NCBI GenBank assembly: GCA_028826165.1
Contig: JAPDFW010000121.1
Span: 62,001 to 126,000 of the forward strand
DNA from: Anaeramoeba ignava BMAN
Lineage: Eukaryota; Protista; Anaeramoebae
Reading direction: 5' to 3'
DNA length: 64,000 nucleotides
Made by a program: the position numbers and the translations under genes
The notes under the pieces: model-generated
Database searches by the model: none
Told to the model about the DNA's origin: nothing
What the model saw: only the letters and a program-made list of their open reading frames with translations
In this document: one piece after another, positions 3,756 to 24,254 of the stretch
Layout: each line of letters begins with the position of its first letter
Position numbering within the stretch: the stretch's first letter is position 1

Positions 3756-5325
3756 TCTAGAAAGAAAAGGAAAGAAAATGAAGAGGAAAAAAAGATTAAT
3801 AGTAGAAAATAATACATTCTCGAAAAGGATGATAGGTTGAATTTGAAGTCAAAATTAGAAAAAAATGGGATAACAACAAAAAAAAAGAGAAGATGAATGA
3901 TATCAAATTTCAAACTTTGGAAATATTCAATTTTTATAGAAAGGAGATTAAAGGTAATCAGTTGGAGATAAATCCAATTAAAATAATTTCCAGAATATTA
4001 AAATAATAAATGGAAGGAATTGAAACATAAGAACTTGATAAACGAATTGGAATTTAATTTTTGAAAGGAATGAAATAGAAAAAAAAATGAAATTATGTCA
4101 AAAAATATGAAAATTTTCTAACCCAAGAATAATATGATTGAAAATCTTTTCGAATTTAAATTCAAAAAGACGAATCTTCTCTTTGTATATGAATCTTGGA
4201 ATTCTCAGTATAAAGAAGTTATTTGGAATAGGATAAAACTTGAATTTGAGATTGGAAAGAAAGAAGAAAGAATTCAAAATTAATTCGAAATGACGAAAAA
4301 AGGAAGAGAAATGAAACAAAAGAGTAACAAAAAGAATTTTTCTAAAAAAAAAATAAAAAATCAATTAAAATTTTGTATAATTTCGGAGATGAAAACAAAT
4401 ACAAATTTAAAACCAAATTCCAAAGAGAAATTGAAAAATGAGAAAATTGTAATTAATTTTATCGAGTAGAAATGCATAAACGAAAAAAATGAAAACTGAA
4501 AATTTAAAAAAAAATATCTCCCACCCCGAAAAAAACGGGAGCTTTAATAAATAAAAATAAAAAAGAAAATAATAATAAAAATGAAAAGGAAAAAATAAAA
4601 TTAAATCAATTCTAAATTTAAAATTAAAATTAACAAAAAATTTAAATGATAAAGAAAAGGAAAAAAAATTTTTTGTTTTATTTTTTTTTTTTATTGTTGA
4701 ATTTTCGCAAGTTTTTTTTATTATTTAAAGATCTTAAAATTATAAATTAAAATTAAAAATAAATTAAAATTAAAATTAAAATTATAATTAAATTAAAATT
4801 AAAATTATAATTAAAATTATAAATTAAAAAATATTTCTGGCAAATCAATTAAAATTATTTTAAAATTATCAAGCAAATAAAATTAAAATAAATAATAATT
4901 AAATAATGTTTCTTAAATAAATAAATACATAATCTATTTTTAATTCCAAATCTATGATTAAAAAAGGGATTTTATATTAAAAAAAATTAAAATAAAATTA
5001 ATTAAAAAAAATTATTTAAAAAGAAGAAAAATATTTTTTATTTATTTTTTCTCCTTTTCATTTTGCTTATTCACTTTTTTTTATTTAATTTTTTTTATTT
5101 ATTTTTTTTTCATTTTTTCTTTTTTATTTTAAAAAATTTTCTTTGTATTTTTTTTTTAAAAGAAAAAAAAGAAATGAAAAACAAATAATAATATTTATTA
5201 ACCATTTAATTTATTTCCTTATTAAATTTAAACAAATAAAAAAAAAGAAAAGAAAAAGAGAAGAAAAAAAGAAGAAAAAAAAAATTTTTTCCAATCAAAA
5301 AAAAAAACAAAAAAAAATTATTAAA

Positions 5326-6237
5326 ATGAATTCTCAATTAAATATATTTATAACAAATGATGATGGATATGAATCACCAACAATAGCAACATTTATCAGA
5401 GCACTTCTTTCAAAAAATCACAAAGTATATTGTTGTTTACCAGATCAAAACTGGTCTTGGTCAACAAAGATTATAAAAAGCAAAAAAACAACAGCAAAAA
5501 AAATCCGTTATAAATTAAGTCCAAATAGTTTTTATGAAATTTGGATTGTTAACGGACCGCCGGCAAATTGTGTTCAAATTGGATTACTTCATTTATTCAA
5601 AAATATCAAGTTTGATCTAGTTATTTCTGGACCGAATACAGGATCAAATTACGGGACTTTTGCACTAAGTAGCGGTACAATTGGTGCTGCTATTGAGGCT
5701 TGCAATCTTGGATTTAGAAGTGTTGCTCTTAGTTATCATACTCCTAATTTTGATGATTTTGATGATATGAATGCAGAACTTGAATCAAAGCTTTTTCCCA
5801 CTGCAAAAACTTCTTTATCAGCAATTGAACAGATTTTTCTTCAATGGCCTTTGAATCAAGAAAATGTTTTTTTCAATGTGAATATTCCAGTTCATTCAAA
5901 AGAAAATCCAATTTCGGTTTATTATTGTGTTCCTTTTAATCAAACTTATGGATCTCTTTTTGAAGAGAATAATTCTGAAAATTTCGAAAATGAACATAGT
6001 AGTTTTCCTCAGAAATTAATCGATTCAAATCAAAATGAAGTTGAAAAAACTTTTGATTTTTCTTTTGATAAAAATTGGGTTTTTCCTCCTTTGGATGAAA
6101 TTCCTCCAAAAAGTGATCTTTATGGATTATTAACTGGATATGGAACTGTTACTCTTTATTCATCTTGTCTTCATCATTTCAATTCTGCTTTTGTTTTTGA
6201 TCAATTAAATTTAAATTTAGATCAAAAAGAAAATTAA
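5326..6237 (+). CDS. surE: SurE-family 5'/3'-nucleotidase / acid phosphatase
   Basis: TNDDG, NGPPANCV, VISGPNTGSN and SSGTIGAA motifs. Probable start is the ATG at 5326; the upstream part of the ORF is poly-A leader. Confidence 0.9.
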   Translation: MNSQLNIFITNDDGYESPTIATFIRALLSKNHKVYCCLPDQNWSWSTKIIKSKKTTAKKIRYKLSPNSFYEIWIVNGPPANCVQIGLLHLFKNIKFDLVISGPNTGSNYGTFALSSGTIGAAIEACNLGFRSVALSYHTPNFDDFDDMNAELESKLFPTAKTSLSAIEQIFLQWPLNQENVFFNVNIPVHSKENPISVYYCVPFNQTYGSLFEENNSENFENEHSSFPQKLIDSNQNEVEKTFDFSFDKNWVFPPLDEIPPKSDLYGLLTGYGTVTLYSSCLHHFNSAFVFDQLNLNLDQKEN

Positions 6238-6416: not shown

Positions 6417-8081
6417 TTAGTTATTATTATCATTATCAATATCATCATTATCAATTCCATCAAGTTTGAATAAACCACGATTAACAAGAAAACCAATAGC
6501 TCTTTCAAACCCAATAAAAGAAATAAATTCTTTGACATTTTCGTGGCAAAGATTAAAGAAGAAAGTATTGACAACATGATTCAAAGCAAAATTATGAGAA
6601 GTTGTCAAATCTTTAAGTCTTTCTTTGATATTCAATTTTTTTGGATCTTTTGAGCATTTTTCTTCATTATAATAAATAACATTTGTGAAGTATTTCTGAG
6701 CAATAGTATTTTCTTTAATAACAATAGATAAAACTTGCAGAATTGGAACCAATAGTTCAGGTGCTTTTCTTGTTGATTCAAATTCTCCGTCTTGAAATAC
6801 AAATGATTGATCTAATTGAATTTGCAAAATGTGTAATAATTTGATTAAAAGTGATTCTTGTGTTTTTTCTGATGTTGTTTTTGTAAGATGAGACACATAT
6901 CCTTCAGGAATAAACAAAAGCACAGTGATCGCCTTCAATTTGATCCGGTAAATCACTGAATTTTCATCCTCTAAATTTGGAGGATCAAAAATCAAATCAT
7001 CATCAATATCTTGTTCATTTTCATTTTCATTTTGATTTTCATTTTCATTTTGATTTTGATTTTGATTTTGATTTTGATTTTCTTTTTCATTTTCATTTTC
7101 ATTTGAATTTTCTTTTAAATTTTCATTTAAATTTTCGTTTGAATTTTCATTTAAATTCATTTTTGAATTGAAATCATCCGATAAATAATTTTCCATTTGA
7201 ACTTGTTTTGGGTTTGGAAATAGCAAAATATTAATTAAATGTAAACCAATTTGTTGTGTATAAATTTTCATGATAAGTTGACTTTTTTTGCTCTTCAAAT
7301 CCTTTTCCTTTTCATCAAGATAATCTTGATGTTCATCATTAATATCATTATAAATTAATAACAATAAATTGTGAATAATTTCAAATTTATCAGGATCTGG
7401 CCCTTTTGTTGATTGGAGATATTTCTCAATAATGAAGCATGAAATATCTCTGTATTTCTTCTTGCGAAGATCTTCTAGTAATTCTTTGTTCAAACTAAGA
7501 TGAAAAAGACAACGAGTAACAAAAGAGAGAAAAGAATCATTTTCAATTGAATTTTGAAGTGAATTTAAAAGTAAATCAAGTCCATTGATTGATTTGAAAA
7601 ATTGCTGCGCAGTTTCATTTTGGAAAAGGGTGTTAATTAGACATTTTAATGATTCTTCTCGCAACAAATCCTTTGATTCCTTTTCTTGTTTTTTTTGTGT
7701 TGTTTTTTGTTCTTGATCCTTCTGTTCAACTTGATTTTCCAATTTATTTTCCAATTGATTTAGATTGAATTGACTAGGAAATGTTGTTTGAGAAAGAAAA
7801 GAAACAAAATCACTTGTTAAAATATCTGAAGAAATTGTTTTTTCACGAAGTAAGATTCTTATTAGAATTAAATATTGTGTTTTTAATTCGTTTTTTAATG
7901 TGTTGTTTTTATTTAGAAGTTGATTTTTTGAAAATTGAATTAATTTTAATTTAATTTCTTCATCTTTTGAATTTTTGCAAAATTCTCTTTGGTTTTGATT
8001 TTCTGTGTTAAATTTTGTTAATAATTCAACTTGTTCTTGTTGATTTTGTGATTTTTGAAGTTGATTTAAAAGGGTTTCCAT
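6417..8081 (-). CDS. RIC8: Ric-8/synembryn-like G-alpha chaperone/GEF (armadillo repeats)
   Basis: ESLKCLINTLFQNETAQQFF and C-terminal FNLCHENVKEFISFIGFERAIGFLVNRGL match remembered Ric-8 signatures (ALKCLCN..F; LC.E....FVKYTGYGNAAGLL..RGL). Confidence 0.8.
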   Translation of the reverse strand: METLLNQLQKSQNQQEQVELLTKFNTENQNQREFCKNSKDEEIKLKLIQFSKNQLLNKNNTLKNELKTQYLILIRILLREKTISSDILTSDFVSFLSQTTFPSQFNLNQLENKLENQVEQKDQEQKTTQKKQEKESKDLLREESLKCLINTLFQNETAQQFFKSINGLDLLLNSLQNSIENDSFLSFVTRCLFHLSLNKELLEDLRKKKYRDISCFIIEKYLQSTKGPDPDKFEIIHNLLLLIYNDINDEHQDYLDEKEKDLKSKKSQLIMKIYTQQIGLHLINILLFPNPKQVQMENYLSDDFNSKMNLNENSNENLNENLKENSNENENEKENQNQNQNQNQNENENQNENENEQDIDDDLIFDPPNLEDENSVIYRIKLKAITVLLFIPEGYVSHLTKTTSEKTQESLLIKLLHILQIQLDQSFVFQDGEFESTRKAPELLVPILQVLSIVIKENTIAQKYFTNVIYYNEEKCSKDPKKLNIKERLKDLTTSHNFALNHVVNTFFFNLCHENVKEFISFIGFERAIGFLVNRGLFKLDGIDNDDIDNDNNN

Positions 8082-8284
8082 TAAGATCTTTAAAATGTAT
8101 TTTTAATTTGAAACTAAAAAGAAAAAGAAAAAAAATGAAAAAAAATTTTTTTTTAATTTTTAATTTTTAATTTTTAATTTAGATTTTTAATTCGAATTAT
8201 GAAAAAGAAAAAAGAAAAAAGAAAAAAGAAAAAAGAAAAAAAAGAAAAAAAAGATCTTTTTTAAAATGGGATTTTAAATTGATT

Positions 8285-8675
8285 TTAAATTTTAATTTCG
8301 AATTTAATTTTAATTTTAATTTTAATTTTAATTTTAATTTTAATTTTAATTTTAATTTTAATTTCGAATTTTAATTTTAATTTTAATTTCGAATTGATTT
8401 TAATTTTAATTTTAATTTGATTTCGAATTGATTTTGATTTTGATTTTAATTTTTGGAATTAATTTTAATTTTGATTTTAATTTTAAATTTGATTTTAATT
8501 TTAATTTTAATTTCGAATTTGAATTGAATTTAATTTTAATTTTAATTTTAATTTCGAATTAATTTAAATTTGAATTTAATTTTAAATTCGAATTGATTTT
8601 AATTTTAATTTTAATTTTGATTTTTGATTTTAATTTCGAATTGAATTTAATTTTAATTTTGATTTTAATTTAATT
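8285..8675. repeat. (TTTTAA)n tract with TTTCGAA variants, 3' flank of rvt
   Basis: Directly visible. Confidence 0.9.
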
Positions 8676-11286
8676 TTAAGCTTTTAATGATGTATCTTTC
8701 ACTTTGGATGATAAAATTAACTGCATAGGTACTAATTCAGTTATTAAAAATCTAAAAGTACCAAAATGATCCAATATTTCAGAACCAAATCTAACAATAA
8801 CCCATCTCCAATAAGAAGAAAGATTTGAATTCCACTTTCCTGACAATTCATTTTTACGAGAAATAAAATCTTGAATCAAAGCTGCATTTTCAGTTGATTC
8901 AAAAGGATCACAAGGTTCAATAGTGGAAAACATTTCAAGAAAATCAGAAGCATAAGGACTATCTTCAACTTTCTTCCAATCTTCACCATTAAAATTATCA
9001 TCTTTTGATTCCAAATCCATTGAATCTTTATTCTTAACAATTTTAATTCTTTTCATTTTTTTTATTCCAAAAGTTCTTTTTTTGATTGGAAATTTTCGAA
9101 CTTTTTTTCTTATAAATTTTCTTCTTATTGGTCTTTTTTTCATTCTTAAAAATTGTTTGGATTCTTCAAAATAATGTTGTTCAAAAGAAGCTAAATTGAG
9201 TCCAACATGATTCAAACCTAATCCACCTGAAGAAACTGGGAAAAATAAAAGAGCTTCAGGAAAATCCACTTTTTGAGTTAGAATTTTTTGAAGAGAATTT
9301 CGAATTTCTTGTTCAATTCCATGATCGCCAAATAAATTGTTGTGGATTTTCATCAATCGAGAACCAATCATTTTCAAATGATCTTGTCCAAGTGAAACAA
9401 AAGGAGCAACACATTTGAGAATATAATTCATAAAGGAATTATAAATGTTGATTTTGGATAAAATGGGAACATTTTCACCTTTTATTCTGTTCATCATATT
9501 TTGTTCCAAATCAACAATAGCAGATTCATAAACACCCCATTTCCCGTTAGGTTTCATTTCCAAAAGAGCCCAACGAGGAGGATCTTGAGGGAGATTTTTT
9601 AAAGTGATATTTTTTTGATTTTCAATTTGAATTTCTTGATTTTCATTTTGATTTCTGATTTAGTGGTTGAATCATTGTACTTCCACATTTCCTCATATTC
9701 AGTTCTATATTCAAATCTTTCGAAAAAGTAACCATTGATTCCCATGCATTTAATGCTTCATCTTCTTTGGTTGTTACAAAAAAAGCATCATCAACAACTC
9801 TTGCAATACGAACACTTGATTGTGTAAATACAAACAAATCAAAAAAAACAAGAACAAGTTCAGCAAACACTTTTGAAATTAAAAAATTCAAAGGAACACC
9901 TTCTTTTATAACCCCCGGGGTTTTATCACTATGTAAAGTTGGAATTTTCAAAAAGTTTTCAAAAAATTTTGTCCATTTTTTTGGAAATCCAATTTTTTCA
10001 CAAAGGAAAATAATCAAATCATGATTGATGCTTGGATAGAAATTTGCGAAGTCAGAACGAAGAAGATAAATGGGGTCTTGAGGCCTGACTTTTTGGTTTA
10101 TAGACACATTTGCAGAGATGTATTGAAGAAGATTCTGGAATGAATCAGGTGATTCTATGTCTCCATCACGTGAGTATTCATCAATACCTCCATCAAAATC
10201 AGGTATTTGAACCATAAAAAGCTCACTTAAATTATTGTGATTGATTGATTCAATTGAATTGCTTTCCATTTCTGAAAATCCATAAATATCATTAGTTAAA
10301 TCTGCAAAAAGAGGCTTTATAATTTGGCCAATTCGACTTCCAATTATATCAAATAGTAAAGATGTTAAAAGATCACAATCCACAAATGTTCTGTATTTAT
10401 TACGAGTCCAAATGGTGCGGAATTGAATAGGATCTTGTCCCCAATTCCAGTCCTCAATATTATTTATCAACAGAGTTAAAACACCTGCATATTCATTTAC
10501 AAGTAACTTATTTTTACTGATTGCTTTTGCTTTTGTTCTGTTTTCTGCTTTTTGATAAATATTGCCACTCAATGAATTCAAATGTGATTTAACTTCATCG
10601 TTTGTTATTTTTCTTTCTAATTGTGTCGGGATTTCTTCTTGAATATTTTTTTTCATTTGTTCAAAATTTTCTTCAAATTGTAAAAAAATTTGATCCAAAA
10701 TTTCTGACTTGATTATCTTCTTTTCTGGTTTGACCCAAGAATCAACTTGTTTTCTACATTCTTCTTTTGCTTTTTCTTCATTGATTTCTTCTTGATCTTG
10801 ATCTTTTTCTTTTTCTGCCCATTCTTCAAGAATACATCCAAAAATATATGCAAATTCTGCTCTTCTTGTTCCTTTTTTGATTTCTTCTTTAAGTGAATTT
10901 TCAATTTGTTCTAATTTTTTAGGTGATAAAGCACCTATTGAATATTCAAATTTGAAAGTATCTAGATTAAAAATATCTTGATGAAGAGATTCCTAAATTA
11001 AAATTAATTCAATTAAAAATTAAAATTCATTTATAAAATCAATTAAAAATTAAATTAAAATTCATTTATAAAATTAAAATTAAAATTCATTTAAAATTAA
11101 AATTTAAATTAAAATTACATTCGCAAATTTTGCTTCATGTAATCCATCAATCATAATTTGAATTCTTTCTAAAATATCTTTTTCTTTTTCTGTTTTTTCA
11201 ATAATTTTTTGATAATGTTCTGTTAATTTTTGTCTTTGTCTTCTTGCTTCTTTTAATTTAATTTGAGCAATTAATTTTTCTTCCAT
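8676..11286 (-). CDS. rvt: Reverse transcriptase-related cellular gene (rvt family), about 830 aa; intron 10993-11118; one apparent +1 frameshift near 9650
   Basis: Exon 1 11119-11286 splices in frame to 10992, which continues into ORF 10698. rvt-type motifs: N-terminal coiled coil, EFAYIFGCILEEW, WNW..NKYR..DCDLL..IIG, RSDFANFYPSINH (RT3), GVPLNFLISKVFAELVL (RT4), RVVDD (RT5), LPQDPPRWALL, FPVSSGGLGL, YWRWVIVRFGSEILDHFG..LVP. No endonuclease domain or LTRs. Confidence 0.85.
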
Positions 11287-11440
11287 TTATTTTTTTTTTT
11301 TTTGATTTAATAAAAATGAAAAATGAAAAAAATGAAAAAAATAAAAATGTTTAAATAGTTTTTGAAAAATTTTTTTTTTTAATTAAAAAAATTGAAAGAA
11401 TAAAAGAATAAAAGAAAAAGAAAAAAAAAAATGAAAGGAA

Positions 11441-14400
11441 TTAAAACCTTTTCATAAAAAGAAGAATTTGTGAAATTTCTTGATTAATTGGAAATTGAAA
11501 ATAAGAAAGAGAATCTTCAAGTTTTTTTTTTAAATTATCTAAAGAATTTGGGTATTTAATTAATTGTTCAGAATTTTTTTGAATAAGATTTTGAATCCAA
11601 TTTAAAATAACTTGTGGATTTGAATTAAAACAAGTTCCAAAGCATTAAAATCATTGATAATAATTCACTTTTTTCAAGATAAAAATTTTCAAAAAATGTT
11701 TTTGGATCATTACTTGTAAAAAATTCTAATAATTTTTGTGAATTTCGAAGAAATAATAATTGTCCTAAATCTTGAGAAATTGGTTTTAAATTTTGATTTT
11801 CGAATTGATTTTCAAATTGATTTTGATTTTCGAATTGATTTTGAAATAAATTTTGAAATTGAAATTGAAATTGATTTTCAAATTGATTTTGATTTTGATT
11901 TTGATTTTCAAATTGATTTTGATTTTCAAATTGATTTTGATTTTCAAATTGATTTTGATTTTCAAATTGATTTTGATTTTCAAATTGATTTTGATTTTGA
12001 TTTTCAAATTGATTTTGATTTTGATTTTGATTTTGATTTTGATTTTGATTTTGATTTTGATTTTGATTTTGATTTTCGAATTGATTTTGATTTTGATTTT
12101 GATTTTGAAATTTTTGGATTAAAGATTCAAAAATTTGAGTACTATCTCTTAAAATACTAGATAATTTACTTTGAATTATTCTTGATTGATTTGATTGTTG
12201 AATATTTAATTTAAATTTTGAATTTCTTGAATTTTTTGTTGAGTAAATACTTGCTTTTGATTTTCTGTTAAAGTTAGTTTCTGATTTGAAAAATGTGAAA
12301 GAAATTCATGTGTAAGATTTTCAATAAATTTATTTGAAATTTGTGAGGTCATTATATTTATGGATTGATCTTCTTTTTGGTTGTAAAAATGAATGTATTC
12401 TTGAGTTTTTTGTTTTGATAACATTATCCAAAATTTGAGTTAAAATTGGCTTGATTTTTTCAAAATAAGAAACTTGAATTTTATTCCATAAACTTTGATT
12501 TATTGTTGAAATTGTGATATTTGTGTTATATTTTTCTTGAATTTGTTTCCATAGATTTGAAAACTGTGTATGAACTTCTATTATTTCTTTATCTATAAAT
12601 GCAATAAACTTATCTTTTTCTTTCATAATTTGTTCTGATTGATTATCACTATAAACTTTCAAAATTTTATTGATTTTCTCAAGTTGTTCTTTCTTATTTT
12701 GAAGTCGATTTTCATATTGAAGTTTCAAATTTTGTAATTTTCGAATTTCTTGTTTAAGTAATTCTTTATCATTTAATTCTTTATCATTTTGATTTTCTAT
12801 TTCATTAACATTTTGATTTTCATTTTCATTTTGATTTTCATTTTGATTTTGAATTTCATTTTTAATTTCATTTTCATTTTTAATTTCATTTTCATTTTCT
12901 ATTTCATTAACATTTTGATTTTCATTTTTAATTTCATTTTCATTTTGAATTTCATTTTGGTTATCACTTTCTATTTGGTCTAATGTTATTTCTTGATTTT
13001 TATTTTTATCATCATTTTCATTTTCATTATCATTTTCATTTTCATTATCATTTTCATTTTCATTTTCATTTTCATTTTCATTTTCATTTTTATTTTCATT
13101 TTTATTTTTATTTTGATTTTGATTTTCATTTTCATCATCATTTTCATTTTCATTTTCATTTTCATTTTGATTTTGATTTTCATTTTCATTTTCATCATCA
13201 TTTTCACTTTGATTTTGATTTTGATTTTGATTTTGATTTTGATTTTCATTTTCATTTTCATTTTGATTATCATTTTCTATTTGGTCTAATGTTATTTCAT
13301 TTTCTTGTGTTTTATTTTTATCATTATTTTCATTTTGATTTCCATTATCATTTTCATTATCATTTTTATTTTCATTATCATTTTTATTTTCATTTTCATT
13401 ATCATTTTCATTATCATTTTCATTATCATTTTTATTATCATTTTCATTTTCATTTTCATTATCATTATCATTATCATTATCATTATCATTTTCATTTTCA
13501 TTTTCATTTTTATTTTCATTATCATTTTCATTATCATTTTCATTATCATTTTCATTATCATTTTTATTATCATTTTCACTTTGATTTTGATTTTGATTTT
13601 GATTTTCATTTCCATTTTGATTATCATTTTCTATTTGGTCTAATGTTATTTCTTGTGCTTTATTTTTATCATTATTTTCATTTTGATTTTCATTATCATT
13701 TTCATTTTCATTATCACTTTCACTTTCACTTTCACTTTCATTTTCACTTTCATTTTCACTTTCATTTTCATTTTCATTTTCACTTTCACTTTCACTTTCA
13801 TTTTCATTATCATTTTCACTTTCATTTCCATCATCATTTTCATTTTCGTTTTCATTTTCATTTTCATTTTCATTTTCATTTTCATTATCATTTTCATTAT
13901 CATTTTCATTATCATTTTCATTATCATTTTCATTATCATTTTCATTATCATTTTCATTATCATTTTCATTATCATTTTCATTTTCATTTTCATTTTCATT
14001 ATCATTTTCATTATCATTTTCATTTTTGATTTTCATTTTTGATTTTCATTTTCATTTTCATTTTCATTATCATTTTCATTATCATTTTCATTATCATTTT
14101 CATTATCATTTTCATTATCATTTTCATTATCATTTTCATTTTTCATTATCATTTTCATTATCATTTTCATTTTCACTTTCATTATCATTTTCATTATCAT
14201 TTTCATTATCATTTTCATTTTCATTTTCATTATCATTTTCATTATCATTTTCATTATCATTTTCATTATCATTATCATTTTCATTATCATTTTCATTATC
14301 ATTTTCATTTTCATTTTCATTTTTATCATTTTCATTATCATTTTCATTATCATTATCATTTTCATTTTCATTATCATTTTCATTATCATTTTCATTATCA

Positions 14401-15215
14401 TTTTCATTATCATTTTTATTATCATTTTCATTATCGTTTTCATTTTGATTTTGATTTTGATTTTGATTTTGATTTTGATTTTGATTTTGATTTTGATTTT
14501 GATTTTGATTTTGATTTTGATTTTGATTTTGATTTTGATTTTGATTTTGATTTTGATTTTGATTTTGATTTTGATTTTGATTTTCATTTTGATTTTCATT
14601 ATCATTTTCATTATCATTTTCATTATCATTTTCATTATCATTTTCATTATCATTTTCATTATCATTTTCATTATCATTTTCATTTTCATTATCATTTTCA
14701 TTTTCATTATCATTTTCATTTTCATTTTCATTTTCATTTTGATTTTCATTTTTATTATCATTTTTATTTTTATTTTGATTTTGATTTTGATTTTGATTTT
14801 CATCATCATTTTCATTTTCATTTTCATTTTCATTTTCATTTTCATTTTCATTTTGATTTTCATTTTCATTTTCATTTTCATTTTCATTTTCATTTTCATT
14901 TTCATTTTCATTTTCATTTTCGCTTTGATTTTTATTATCAATTTCACTTTGATTTTGGATTTGAATTTGGTTTTGGTTATCATTTTCTATTTGGTCTAAT
15001 GTTATTTCTTGGTTTTTATTTTCTGTAATTTGATTTTCCATTTTAAATAAGTGAAATAATTTTTATAAAAAAAAAAAGAAAAAAATTTGTTCAAAATTTA
15101 AATTTAATTGCAAAAAAAAATATAATTAATTACTATCATTTCCATTATCAATATTATTTAAGTTTTCTTTTTCAAGTGGATTTAAAATATTTTTAGAAAT
15201 TGTTTGAGAATCCAT
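11441..15215 (-). CDS. Hypothetical protein dominated by Asn/Asp/Glu/Gln low-complexity repeats with a recurring EITLDQIE(N/S)DNQ unit, then a coiled coil and helical C-terminus; several apparent frameshifts
   Basis: ATG at 15215 preceded by an Inr-like motif. ORFs 15041, 14036 and 12424 are collinear; the reading frame ends at TAA 11441-11443. Confidence 0.5.
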
Positions 15216-19695: not shown

Positions 19696-21574
19696 TTAAA
19701 TGAAATAAGATTCAACTTCATCAACAACCCATGAATTATAAGAACCAGCTAAATAACTTTGTGCTTCATTTGATTGATAAGTAATTCCATTAGGTAGATT
19801 ATAACTGTAACCAAAATTTGACCAACCAGCTTGTAAATCAGAACGTAATTCAAAATCACTACCTATTTTAATAAATATAAATATTTTAATTTTAAGTTTA
19901 AATAATATTTTTATTTATTATATTAATATTTTTAATTATTTATTATTCCAATTTTAATTATAATAAAATATATTAAAAAAAATGGAATAAATATTTTAAT
20001 AAATATATAAATATTTAATTTTAATAATAATTAATAGTAATTTAATTTAGATTTATTTTATTTTAATTTGAAATAATACTTTCATTTATTATATTAATAT
20101 TTTGGATTATTTATTATTTTAATTTTAATTATAATAATAAATATTTATTAAATAAAAAATTATTTATATTTACTTCCAAAAGTTGGACCATAGCTTGAAG
20201 TAGAATAAATTGCATATTGAGGTTGTTTAATTGTAAACTTTGCAGGTTTTCTATCCCCTTTATCATTTCTTAATGAAAAAATAAATGCATTTGAATCATT
20301 AATGTATTCTCCATATCTTGAATGTTTAAATCCAACTCGAGTAAAACCTCCAAAAATAAAATTATCTTTTGTTTTGATAATAACTAATGTTTTTCCTTTC
20401 CCATCAACTTTTGAATGCCAATTTTGAGAATTAAATCCATCTCTTTTTGCTGAAAATCCTTTTTTCATTTTAGAAAAAAAATCATTATCATTTATCCATT
20501 CTTGTAATTTCTTTTGGAATTCCATTTCTTGTTTCATTTTCTCATTCTCTTCTTTCATTTTCTCAACTTCTTTCTTCCATTTATCTTCAATTTCTTTCTC
20601 TTTATTTTTTACTTTTTTTTCTTCCATTTCTCTTCAATTTCAATTTTCATTTGTTGATTTTCTTTCTCTTTCTCTTCAAATTCTTTCTTCCATTTCTCTT
20701 CAATTTCTTTCTCTTTGTTTTCAATTTCTTTGTTTTGAATATCAATTAAAAAATAATTTGGAAGAAAAATATCAAATTGTTTTAATTTATCAAAATCTTG
20801 TTTTGAAATTGAATCTTTATCAAATAATGAAAAAAAAGAATGAAATAATCTTTTCTTTGCATTCATTTTGTGTTTATATTTCATTCCTTTTAAGGATTTA
20901 ACTCTTTTTTCAATCCAATTATTTAAAAATTGAAAAAAATCAAATTGAAAAATTTCTTTTTTTTGTTGTTTAAATTGAATAAATTTGATAATTTCTTCTT
21001 TAGTTAAATTGAATAAATTTTCATTATTTTGAATTTGGGAAAAATTTTGATTTATTAATTCAAAACATTTTATTTCAATTTCATTTGAATTTAAATTTCG
21101 ATTTTGGAATAAAAATTGGAAAAAATTTGAATAATTAATTGAATTTGAAATTTTTTTTTGAATAATTTCTTTCAATAAATTTAATTTAAAATAAATTGAA
21201 ATTTCCAATAATTGAATAAGATTTTCTTGATTCTCAAAAGAAATATTTCCATAATAAATATAACTCAAAATTGATTCCATTTCTCTTTTATTAAATTGTC
21301 TTAAAAAAATCTTATTAATCTGATCTCTATCTCTTAAAAACTCATTAAAAAAAGAAGATCTTGAAGATAAAATTGATTTATGAACTTTAATTTCAAAAGT
21401 ATTTGGTTCTTTCTCAACAAAAATTGAAAAATCTTTAAATGAATTTCCATTTAAAAGGTTTGAATAATTTTTAATTAAATTTTTTGTTACTTTTTTTTCT
21501 AAATTTTTCATTTCATTTTCATTTTGATTTTGATTTGCATTTTGAATTTGGTTATTATTATTATTATTATCCAT
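19696..21574 (-). CDS. BTB/POZ (+BACK-like) - coiled coil - TLDc domain protein; intron 19863-20173; apparent frameshift near 20615
   Basis: FKDFSI..IKVHKSILSSRSSFF (BTB); FSAKRDGFNSQNWHSKVDGKGKTLVIIKTKDNFIFGGFT..YGPTFG, last exon SNFGYSY..YLAGSYNSWVVDEVESYFI (TLDc). Confidence 0.85.
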
Positions 21575-22427: not shown

Positions 22428-24254
22428 TTAATTATTAAATTTGTTAATTAATAAATCAAATAAATTTGGATTTGTTTGATTTAATTGAAAATAATCAATT
22501 CCAATTTGAATTTCATCAATAATTTCTTGTGTAATTTGAATTTCATTTTTAATTTGATTTGAATAAATCCAATATTCAAATATTTGAAATGATTTATTAC
22601 TTAATTCACTATAATCTGTAACTTTATTAGAAGTATCATTTGTAACAGATAAAAACATTCCTCGATATAATTCACTTCTCATTATTAATATTAATTTAGG
22701 AAATTTATATTGTTTTTCTTTTCTTTCAATAATAAAATCTTTTTCTTTTTCATTTTCATTTTCATTTAAATAAATTCTTTTCATTGTTTCTTCAATTTTT
22801 TCATTTGAATTTATAATTTCTTTAATTTCATAATATAATTTTGGATTTATTATTCTGTTTGAATAAATCATTTCAAATATTTGATTTGATTCTTTAATTG
22901 ATTTTTTTGAAATAATTTCTTGAAGTTTTTCAATTTGATTTTCATCTTTTAATCTATATTTCAATATTAATTTATGAGCTTCAATTATTTCTCCATTTTT
23001 GGTTTTAAATGAAATATCACAAAATTCTTTTCTTTTAAATAATTTTATCAAATCTTCTTCAAGATTGGAAAAAGGAGAATAATAATAAAGAAATGATTTA
23101 TTATATCCACAAGAAATATGATAATTAGAAATTTCTTCATTAAATCTTAATTTAGGAAGTTCAATTTGAATTGGAATTAATTGATATTTTATATTTTCAA
23201 TTCCTAATTGATCAAAATAATTACTTCCAAATCCAATTAGTTTCCCTTTTAATGTTAAAATCAAAGTATAATTATATCCACAAGAAAAATCAAGAATATC
23301 ATCATCATTTTCAAATAAAGATGATTTGATTTCAGTAAATTCATAAGTATTTTCATCTTTGCCAAGTCCATTAAAAAAAGCTCTTCCACATGAATAAAGT
23401 TTTCTTTTTGTATTTTCATTTTCATTTTCATTTTCATTTTCATTTTCATTTTCATTTTCATTTTCATTTTCATTTTCATTTTCATTTTCAATTAACATTA
23501 TTGAATGAAATTCTCCACATTGAATATCAATTATTTTGCCTTTTGGAATATTTTGGATTTTGGTTAATTTTTGGATTTTTGTTTCATATCTTTTTGATTC
23601 TCCTAATCCAAGTTTTCCATAGTGATTATATCCGCATCCAAATAATTCTTGATTTGAATTTAAAAGAAAAATATTTTTTGAAGAATTTCCTGAAAATATT
23701 TTAGAAACATTTTTCATCATTAAAATTGGTTTTTCTGTTTTTGGAAGTGTTTTAGAATCAAAACCAAGTTGAGCAAAATGATTTGAACCAATTCCATAAA
23801 CATTTTGATTTGAAGTTAATAAGTAAATTGTACTGTATCCAGAAACAATATCTTCAATTATTCTATCATTTGTATCTTCAATTAATGATGAAATATTGAT
23901 AAATTCTTTTGGATTTTTTGGATTAATATCTCTTCCTTTGGCAAATACATTTCCTTCTATTGTTAAAATAGCTTCATTGTGAGAACCAACAGTTACTTTT
24001 TGAATATTTTCTTCAATTTGGATTTTTTCAGGATTTTGTTTTGAATCATTTTCATTTAAATATTCTATTGCTTTTCCATTTTTAAAAAGGAAAATTGTTG
24101 AAAAACCTCCTGATGAAATTTGTTTAATTTGTTTTTCATTTTCATTTTCATTTTCATTTTCAAATTTAAATTGAATTGGTTTTGTTATTTCATTTGTTTC
24201 ATTTTTGATAAGTTTTGGATCATAATTTAAACCAAAAAATAAACAATCATTCAT
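22428..24254 (-). CDS. RCC1-repeat + tandem BTB protein (copy 1, no CaaX)
   Basis: RCC1 blades (GSN..QLG, CG.N..G.LG, CG..H/YT) followed by FCDISF..AHKLIL and KDFII..LILIMRSELYRGMF BTB domains. Confidence 0.9.
   Translation of the reverse strand: MNDCLFFGLNYDPKLIKNETNEITKPIQFKFENENENENEKQIKQISSGGFSTIFLFKNGKAIEYLNENDSKQNPEKIQIEENIQKVTVGSHNEAILTIEGNVFAKGRDINPKNPKEFINISSLIEDTNDRIIEDIVSGYSTIYLLTSNQNVYGIGSNHFAQLGFDSKTLPKTEKPILMMKNVSKIFSGNSSKNIFLLNSNQELFGCGYNHYGKLGLGESKRYETKIQKLTKIQNIPKGKIIDIQCGEFHSIMLIENENENENENENENENENENENENENTKRKLYSCGRAFFNGLGKDENTYEFTEIKSSLFENDDDILDFSCGYNYTLILTLKGKLIGFGSNYFDQLGIENIKYQLIPIQIELPKLRFNEEISNYHISCGYNKSFLYYYSPFSNLEEDLIKLFKRKEFCDISFKTKNGEIIEAHKLILKYRLKDENQIEKLQEIISKKSIKESNQIFEMIYSNRIINPKLYYEIKEIINSNEKIEETMKRIYLNENENEKEKDFIIERKEKQYKFPKLILIMRSELYRGMFLSVTNDTSNKVTDYSELSNKSFQIFEYWIYSNQIKNEIQITQEIIDEIQIGIDYFQLNQTNPNLFDLLINKFNN

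Follow-up and report, generated by a model that had tools for sequence, protein, structure and literature searches.

Gene structure and integrity

We examined a window of 64,000 nucleotides (nt) of the Anaeramoeba ignava BMAN genome (assembly GCA_028826165.1, contig JAPDFW010000121.1, positions 62,001 to 126,000), a stretch that is extremely AT-rich and that carries a reverse transcriptase (RT) gene of the rvt family. Its ATG is at 11286, and from there the gene runs along the minus strand to 8676 (positions are those of the window, and all features of the gene are on the minus strand). Its first exon (11119..11286), as read from the open reading frame (ORF) and its translation, has 56 codons (MEEKLIAQIKLKEARRQRQ...AKFAN) and specifies the helical N-terminus that is conserved in rvt proteins. 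This is followed by a spliceosomal intron of 126 nt (intron 1, 10993..11118), which has GT..AG borders and a GC content of 5.6% and is full of AATTTT-like repeats, and then by exon 2 (8679..10992), which comprises 771 codons after removal of a surplus base and encodes the RT fingers and palm and the rvt-specific C-terminal domain. Translation ends at a TAA stop codon (8676..8678). Over 438 residues the product is 100% identical to the public record KAJ5068051.1 (795 amino acids (aa), P0001 in our alignments), which is labelled 'hypothetical protein M0811_12637 [Anaeramoeba ignava]'.

As assembled, exon 2 switches frame: the upstream frame ends at a stop at 9645-9643, the downstream frame opens no earlier than 9659, and the two overlap by just 14 nt (9659-9646), as if a true +1 frameshift near 9650 had made the gene a pseudogene. 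We therefore looked at Logan contigs of four public runs aligned to positions 8500-11500, of which X1, X2 and X4 represent one sample and X3 a second study. In long contigs of all four runs, and hence in both studies, the base at 9655 is missing and C replaces G at 9657, so the plus-strand letters of the assembly are in error at 9655..9657 (one base too many at 9655, and a G at 9657 that should be C); read on the minus strand, the assembly has AATCAGAAATC here and the runs have AATGAAAATC. With the version of the runs the local translation becomes ...RKCGSTMIQPLNENQNENQEIQIENQKNITLKNLPQDPPRW..., the corrected exon 2 is 2313 nt long with 771 codons and no stop, and the total protein has 827 aa. 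Moreover, every family-invariant residue 3' of the break has been retained, and the C-terminal piece by itself still scores 9.3e-55 against the profile of the rvt family (UG37, see below). A pseudogene is thus very improbable: the frame break is a one-base assembly error and the gene is intact. The initial annotation, which was made without database searches, had already suspected an extra A near 9650 and had predicted a spliced protein of about 830 aa, and both expectations were borne out.

The assembly error also bears on the public gene model. KAJ5068051.1 reads ...RKCG-N-PPRW... across 9680-9584, where a second 'intron' of 97 nt (9584..9680) has been removed from the minus strand. Contigs of X2 (2483 nt long) and X3 that are spliced at intron 1 are nevertheless unbroken across 9584-9680, and therefore this second intron does not exist. 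The removed stretch is in fact coding and includes the strand after the K-C-G of RT motif E, its 'KCGSTMI' pairing with 'KTGAMAI' of the Herpetosiphon protein and with the family consensus KSGAV, i.e. with RT motif E. The record is consequently short of 32 aa in the region of motif E and the primer grip, its 795 aa being the outcome of a one-base assembly error that was masked by an invented intron, which amounts to a correction of the database entry.

Intron 1, in contrast, is real. Exactly its 126 nt are skipped in contigs of X2 (record 9) and X3 (record 17), where the joint 10991>11118 can be placed equally well one position rightward, which gives 10993-11118, the interval originally annotated. 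The contigs of X1 and X4 extend into the intron, and these two runs are therefore DNA. Since the contigs of X2 and X3 lack the intron and no intronless copy of the gene was found in the assembly (a search of the 42.8 Mb genome), we take X2 and X3 to be complementary DNA; if they are indeed derived from RNA, the rvt gene is transcribed and spliced. No intron occurs at this position in the relative from Anaeramoeba flamelloides (P0012) or in a second rvt lineage of A. ignava (paralog B, see below), and because the P0012 gene has no intron, intron 1 is peculiar to the gene of A. ignava.

The contigs differ from the assembly at several further positions, namely 9115 A>G (Phe>Ser, X2 contig only), 9450 G>A (silent, X3 and X4 contigs), 10156 T>G (silent, X1 contig only) and 10313 G>A (Pro>Leu, X4 contig only), and in some runs there is a one-base length variation at 11326, in a T/A run just 5' of the ATG. 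All of these may be polymorphisms or noise in the contigs.

Family membership, domains and fold

Searches were made with the three exon pieces (window:9646-10992:-, window:8679-9659:- and window:11119-11286:-), and the alignments, trees and fold model are based on database record P0001, i.e. on the protein without 32 of its true residues. The PADLOC profile RT_UG37 was by far the best match, with an expectation value of 1.3e-76 for window:9646-10992:- and the above-mentioned 9.3e-55 for window:8679-9659:-, whereas the next-best profile group, UG17, reached only 1e-14 and was confined to residues 297-438. UG37 is the group of the rvt elements (Mestre et al. 2022, PMC9226505). The gene follows this profile in the same order from position 5 to position 772 of 778, with matches to 5-60 by exon 1 and 53-273, 356-520, 510-673 and 679-772 by exon 2, with positions 273-356 unmatched; Pfam yields RVT_1 alone, and weakly (1.2e-7). 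An exhaustive HMMER search returned 472 homologues, the nearest of which are 750-850 aa long and align from end to end, and a scan of bacterial genomes gave 40 named loci, including one in Herpetosiphon aurantiacus DSM 785, whose protein aligns with query residues 3-783 (BLASTP 3e-23 and 3e-16). The gene is therefore a full-length member of the rvt (UG37) family, in agreement with its initial assignment, and we are highly confident of both its identity and its intactness.

All columns that are conserved in the family are retained in the window protein, in an alignment of 171 rows as well as in one of 119 rows (A2). The catalytic residues, numbered as in P0001, are D370, D457 and D458, and their columns have D in 166/171, 169/171 and 168/171 rows, respectively. 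The first of them belongs to RT motif A (SDFANFYPS, 10030..10056), in which the catalytic Asp is encoded at 10053-10051 and the Tyr five residues further on (Asp+5) at 10038-10036; the other two form the catalytic Asp pair of RT motif C (RVVDD, 9787..9801), whose Arg is found in 166/171 rows. A GVP..ISKVFAE motif is also present. The rvt C-terminal domain (GGLGL; YWxW...FG.FRF..ELVP) is there too, judged by column counts: both glycines of GGLGL (9213..9227) occur in 165/171 rows, G613 being invariant in A2, and in the YWRW motif near the C-terminus (8802..8813), which is followed by FG..FRF, the Tyr is shared by 151 and the Trp by 147 of the 171 rows. Everything that the initial annotation listed as seen, whether coding sequence, motifs or intron, is indeed present in the sequence.

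An AlphaFold model of P0001, built with 119 homologues, has an RT fold with a predicted local distance difference test score (pLDDT) of 89.2 and a predicted template modelling score of 0.89. It starts with two helices (residues 2-34 and 38-51, pLDDT 86-98) and ends with a helical C-terminal domain that is broken by a disordered Lys/Arg-rich stretch (residues 654-689); about 100 residues, modelled in part with low confidence, separate the finger hairpin (strands 247-260) from the strand of motif A (365-369). We know of no solved rvt structure, and matches in the PDB are limited to the RT core, with the RT of a group II intron, R2, LINE-1, a diversity-generating retroelement and DRT9, and with Abi-P2 (by fold) and AbiK (by sequence profile) lower down.

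Among known systems, the rvt of H. aurantiacus DSM 785 (locus L030) is of the same length class and likewise consists of an N-terminal helical region, an RT core, GGLGL and the YWxW...FG.FRF C-terminal domain. It also has an aromatic residue at the Asp+5 or gate position of motif A (YYPS, compared with FYPS in the window gene) and a Val before the Asp pair (RFVDD, compared with RVVDD), and like the window gene it stands alone, with no conserved partner. The two are about 25-28% identical, and the window gene differs in its residence in a eukaryotic nucleus, its spliceosomal intron, its AT-rich codon usage, an N/Q/E-rich linker after motif E and an insert of 35 residues that corresponds to the disordered Lys/Arg-rich stretch of the model (pLDDT below 50). 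Fungal-type rvts (Neurospora crassa RVT and, here, those of Aspergillus, Blastocladiella and Calcarisporiella) belong to the same family, have the same domain order and catalytic residues and are also non-mobile, but they are longer (850-1090 aa), usually have Gly at the gate and His before the Asp pair, in place of the Tyr and Val of the window gene, and are separated from it by a well-supported branch (see below). The basal eukaryotic rvts of Vermistella, Gonapodya and Nowakowskiella are less than 30% identical to the window gene, and both of our trees place them with the fungal-type clade. More remote are the Abi and DRT defence RTs (AbiK, Abi-P2, DRT9), which form one UG/Abi super-group with rvt (PMC9226505) and for which protein-primed synthesis has been reported in the case of AbiK, as it has been proposed for rvt. 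Their matches to the window gene are weak and fall within the RT core (UG17 1e-14, Drt3a 2e-11, Drt9 1e-8), with none outside it, and the AbiK and Abi-P2 structures rank low (AbiK 1e-4 by profile, Abi-P2 rank 43 by fold).

Genomic context and copy number

Downstream of the gene lie Ric8/synembryn (6417-8081) and SurE (5143-6237), and its flanks contain only AT-rich microsatellite-like arrays; Rfam has no match in 7500-12500. Since the top Foldseek matches of the model are R2, LINE-1 ORF2p and group II intron RTs, one may consider the possibility that this is the RT of a retrotransposon, either non-LTR (lacking long terminal repeats, LTRs) or Penelope-like, or else, as Anaeramoeba carries bacterial symbionts, a bacterial contaminant. 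However, the Foldseek matches reflect only the generic RT core (template modelling score 0.3-0.38 by query, 10-14% identity), and compared with the RTs of non-LTR elements, Penelope or group II introns the window gene shares no more than the RT fold, has neither their endonuclease nor their maturase domains, and is low in copy number, this rvt lineage having one locus in the 42.8 Mb genome. Pfam detects no endonuclease domain in the gene, and no LTR or target-site duplication was found in the flanks. The gene also has a spliceosomal intron, a GC content of 29%, similar to the 25% of Ric8, and Ric8 itself 600 bp away on a contig of 167 kb. Both forms of this explanation are thus extremely improbable, and the gene is a non-mobile one, sited among ordinary eukaryotic genes. 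This agrees with its initial description as a non-mobile, intron-containing protist gene, and the X2 and X3 contigs indicate that it is expressed.

AATTTT/AAATT-like arrays are found in both flanks (8090-8680 and 11700-12150) and, in inverse orientation, in the intron (10995-11117). Their arms, up to 120 nt long, are 70-90% complementary, and they look like a genome-wide non-coding feature and not like terminal repeats.

The initial annotation took rvt genes to be single-copy, as they are described to be (PMC9226505), and this is true of the lineage of the window gene but not of the genome, which contains a second rvt lineage with two copies and a pseudogene. This paralog B is 27-29% identical to the window gene and has YFPR and RALDD as its motifs. 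Contigs C101 and C56 carry one copy each, both of them recent, with 97.4% identity over about 3.5 kb. Some 17 kb away from the intact copy on C56 there is a decayed pseudogene (L004, G000:C56:625428-628814) with about 15 stops, its similarity to rvt covering C56:626457-627338 and beyond, with about 60% protein identity over nearly the full length. Because Gonapodya, too, has several rvts, the single-copy character of the family appears to be a loose one.

The upstream flanks of the two paralog B loci (L002, G000:C101:228867-233039, and L003, G000:C56:606490-610632) differ. Neither copy has its conserved N-terminus (MADRQQERE...) in frame with the main ORF, the break falling within an A-rich low-complexity stretch encoding Asn, Lys and Glu, and these frame breaks may be homopolymer assembly errors, as at 9655.

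Active-site residues and the steric gate

RVVDD and FYPS had been singled out as atypical for an rvt, a view that the alignment does not uphold. It contains 171 rvt proteins, of which 53 are fungal-type eukaryotic rows and 118 are others (bacteria and both Anaeramoeba lineages). His precedes the Asp pair in 41/53 fungal-type rows, and FGPS is found at motif A in 37/53; both states are confined to this clade, and they make up the pattern that the initial annotation regarded as typical. Among the other 118 rows, in contrast, Val occupies the position before the Asp pair in 71 and His in none, RVVDD ranks second among the pentapeptides (16 rows) and FYPS is the commonest form of motif A (24 rows). 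Even in the whole alignment Val is the commonest residue before the Asp pair (74/171), and the gate position holds Y or F in 115/171 rows and G in 51/171. Nor are these states limited to bacteria and Anaeramoeba, as Vermistella antarctica (P0024) has identical NFYPS and RVVDD, and RVVDD also occurs in Gonapodya prolifera (P0065) and in Nowakowskiella (P0125). Tyr or Gly in motif A together with Val or His in motif C thus divide bacterial and basal from fungal-type rvts, and are a marker of clades rather than a peculiarity of this gene.

In a profile alignment to the group II intron RT GsI-IIC (6ar1), D138 stands opposite the D of the family, and F143 opposite the y of 'dfyps'. The latter is the Asp+5 position of motif A, which we take to be the steric gate of RTs (D110/Y115 in HIV-1). 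Judging from this alignment, bacterial-type rvts and the window gene appear to have kept the aromatic gate residue, and fungal-type rvts to have lost it. Because the Tyr of FYPS aligns with the steric-gate residue, the window protein should, by prediction, prefer deoxynucleoside triphosphates (dNTPs) over nucleoside triphosphates (NTPs). The Herpetosiphon enzyme is reported to use dNTPs, and the Neurospora enzyme is reportedly able to use NTPs. The earlier suggestion that Tyr in place of Gly may bear on this choice is therefore kept in so far as the residue aligns with the gate, but as a trait of a whole clade and not of this gene alone. The state of this single position, Tyr or Gly, would offer a simple and testable rule for the use of dNTPs or NTPs across the rvt family.

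Origin of the Anaeramoeba rvts

To our knowledge, rvt is the only group of RTs that is common to bacteria and eukaryotes, and it is patchily distributed among the latter. The nearest relative of the window gene is the intronless A. flamelloides gene P0012 (28-32% identity), and the best non-self matches are bacterial or metagenomic, at 30-33% identity. We built two trees, one under LG+C20 with posterior mean site frequencies (63 rows) and one under LG+G4 (43 rows), and applied approximately unbiased (AU) tests to the 43-row set; sequence composition is strongly biased and branches are long.

One possible scenario is that Anaeramoeba took up a bacterial gene, independently of the one that gave rise to the fungal-type rvts by transfer, and that this gene subsequently acquired an intron and a host-like composition. 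In the LG+C20 tree the window gene and its A. flamelloides relative form a pair (99% support in the Shimodaira-Hasegawa-like approximate likelihood ratio test, SH-aLRT) whose placement within its own side is not fixed, yet a branch with 99% SH-aLRT divides this pair, paralog B and all bacterial rows from the 18 rows of fungal-type and other eukaryotic rvts. The bacterial or metagenomic nature of the top matches and the bacterial type of motifs A and C point in the same direction. On the other hand, when the pair was constrained to the eukaryotic clade under LG+G4, this placement was not rejected by the AU test (p-AU 0.635), with a tree that was 6.1 log-likelihood units better, and the best LG+G4 tree unites the eukaryotes, although with a support of just 58%. 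Furthermore, Vermistella, Gonapodya and Nowakowskiella share the motif states, which may hence be ancestral, and no donor clade was identified in the trees, with their biased composition and long branches. A separate bacterial acquisition is therefore a serious possibility, with the odds somewhat against it.

The same observations may be explained by vertical descent, starting either with an rvt of early eukaryotes or with a single ancient transfer between domains, with retention of the ancestral Tyr and Val, in which case paralog B would be an old duplicate. This fits the best LG+G4 tree, where all 17 eukaryotic rows fall on one side of a branch, as well as the finding that a tree joining the two Anaeramoeba lineages is not rejected by the AU test (p-AU 0.553) and the presence of RVVDD and FYPS in basal eukaryotic rvts. 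Nevertheless, the 58% support of the eukaryotic branch, the contradictory 99% branch of the LG+C20 tree and the patchy occurrence of rvt in eukaryotes argue against it, and descent of this kind, too, is a serious possibility, with the odds against it no greater than for the bacterial acquisition. The Anaeramoeba rvts branch near the divide between bacteria and eukaryotes in this family, and lateral and vertical origin are not separable, since one tree contradicts the other and neither origin is rejected by the AU tests. The initial proposal of a lateral gain accordingly finds support in the LG+C20 tree, with its 99% branch, but not in the LG+G4 analysis, which does not reject a eukaryotic placement.

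A more specific idea, which we consider rather unlikely though worth stating, is that the two Anaeramoeba lineages are early-branching eukaryotic rvts that still have the bacterial, i.e. ancestral, active-site states. If so, they would sit on the long and empty branch between bacterial and fungal-type rvts and mark a point before the switch from dNTPs to NTPs, and direct tests would become possible both of how this sole cross-domain family of RTs arose and of what its gate residue does. In any case, the Anaeramoebae, a deep lineage of anaerobic protists, are added here to the hosts of rvt, with two old lineages of which the one described here is expressed; in the literature collection that was searched, no paper links Anaeramoeba with rvt.

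Proposed function

In the rvt family, an N-terminal coiled coil drives multimerisation, and synthesis is protein-primed and requires the C-terminal domain (PMC9226505). Neurospora can do without its rvt protein, which shows terminal transferase activity and whose induction upon a block of translation is strong (PMC3520738). By analogy, and given the alignment, the window protein would multimerise through its N-terminal helices, prime on itself, and add short untemplated deoxynucleotide tails in a Mn-dependent, terminal-transferase-like manner under some stress, the Tyr of FYPS at the steric gate favouring dNTPs over NTPs as it presumably does in bacterial rvts. The priming residue would probably be the conserved C-terminal Tyr of YWRW (8813-8811), for which the findings reported by Yushenova and Arkhipova in 2018 suggest a role in priming. 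We would give this mechanism, that of a multimeric, self-priming, Mn-dependent tail-adding polymerase, slightly less than even odds. As to its biological role, our best guess is a stress-induced one, as reported for the Neurospora gene. An undescribed stress or defence system had also been envisaged for this locus; however, the rvt family has already been described, its defence signal was judged 'inconclusive' (Mestre et al., PMC9226505), and no partner gene is conserved in the 40 bacterial rvt loci beyond close relatives.

Taken as a whole, our reading is that this is an intact, transcribed cellular rvt gene of A. ignava that encodes a stand-alone polymerase of 827 aa, and we put its probability at roughly 0.85. 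Several points count against it. For X2 and X3 the type of run is not recorded (the entries are 'DNA?' and '?'), so that we infer them to be RNA, and the contigs carry no information on expression level or on transcript ends. The A. flamelloides relative, at 28-32% identity, is too distant for gauging purifying selection by the ratio of non-synonymous to synonymous substitution rates. Finally, the mechanism draws on the published biochemistry of the family and on alignment, and the dNTP prediction is based on one aligned residue and on what has been reported of nucleotide use by other rvts.

Other features of the window

Upstream of the rvt gene there are long ORFs that consist mostly of Asn/Glu/Asp repeats (NENENE, NDNEND) and a coiled-coil-like C-terminus, at 12330-14036 (minus strand) and 14033-14983, for which Pfam returned nothing. 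Further along, at 20609-21574 and 22428-24254 (minus strand), the window contains BTB-domain genes, one of them with RCC1 repeats.

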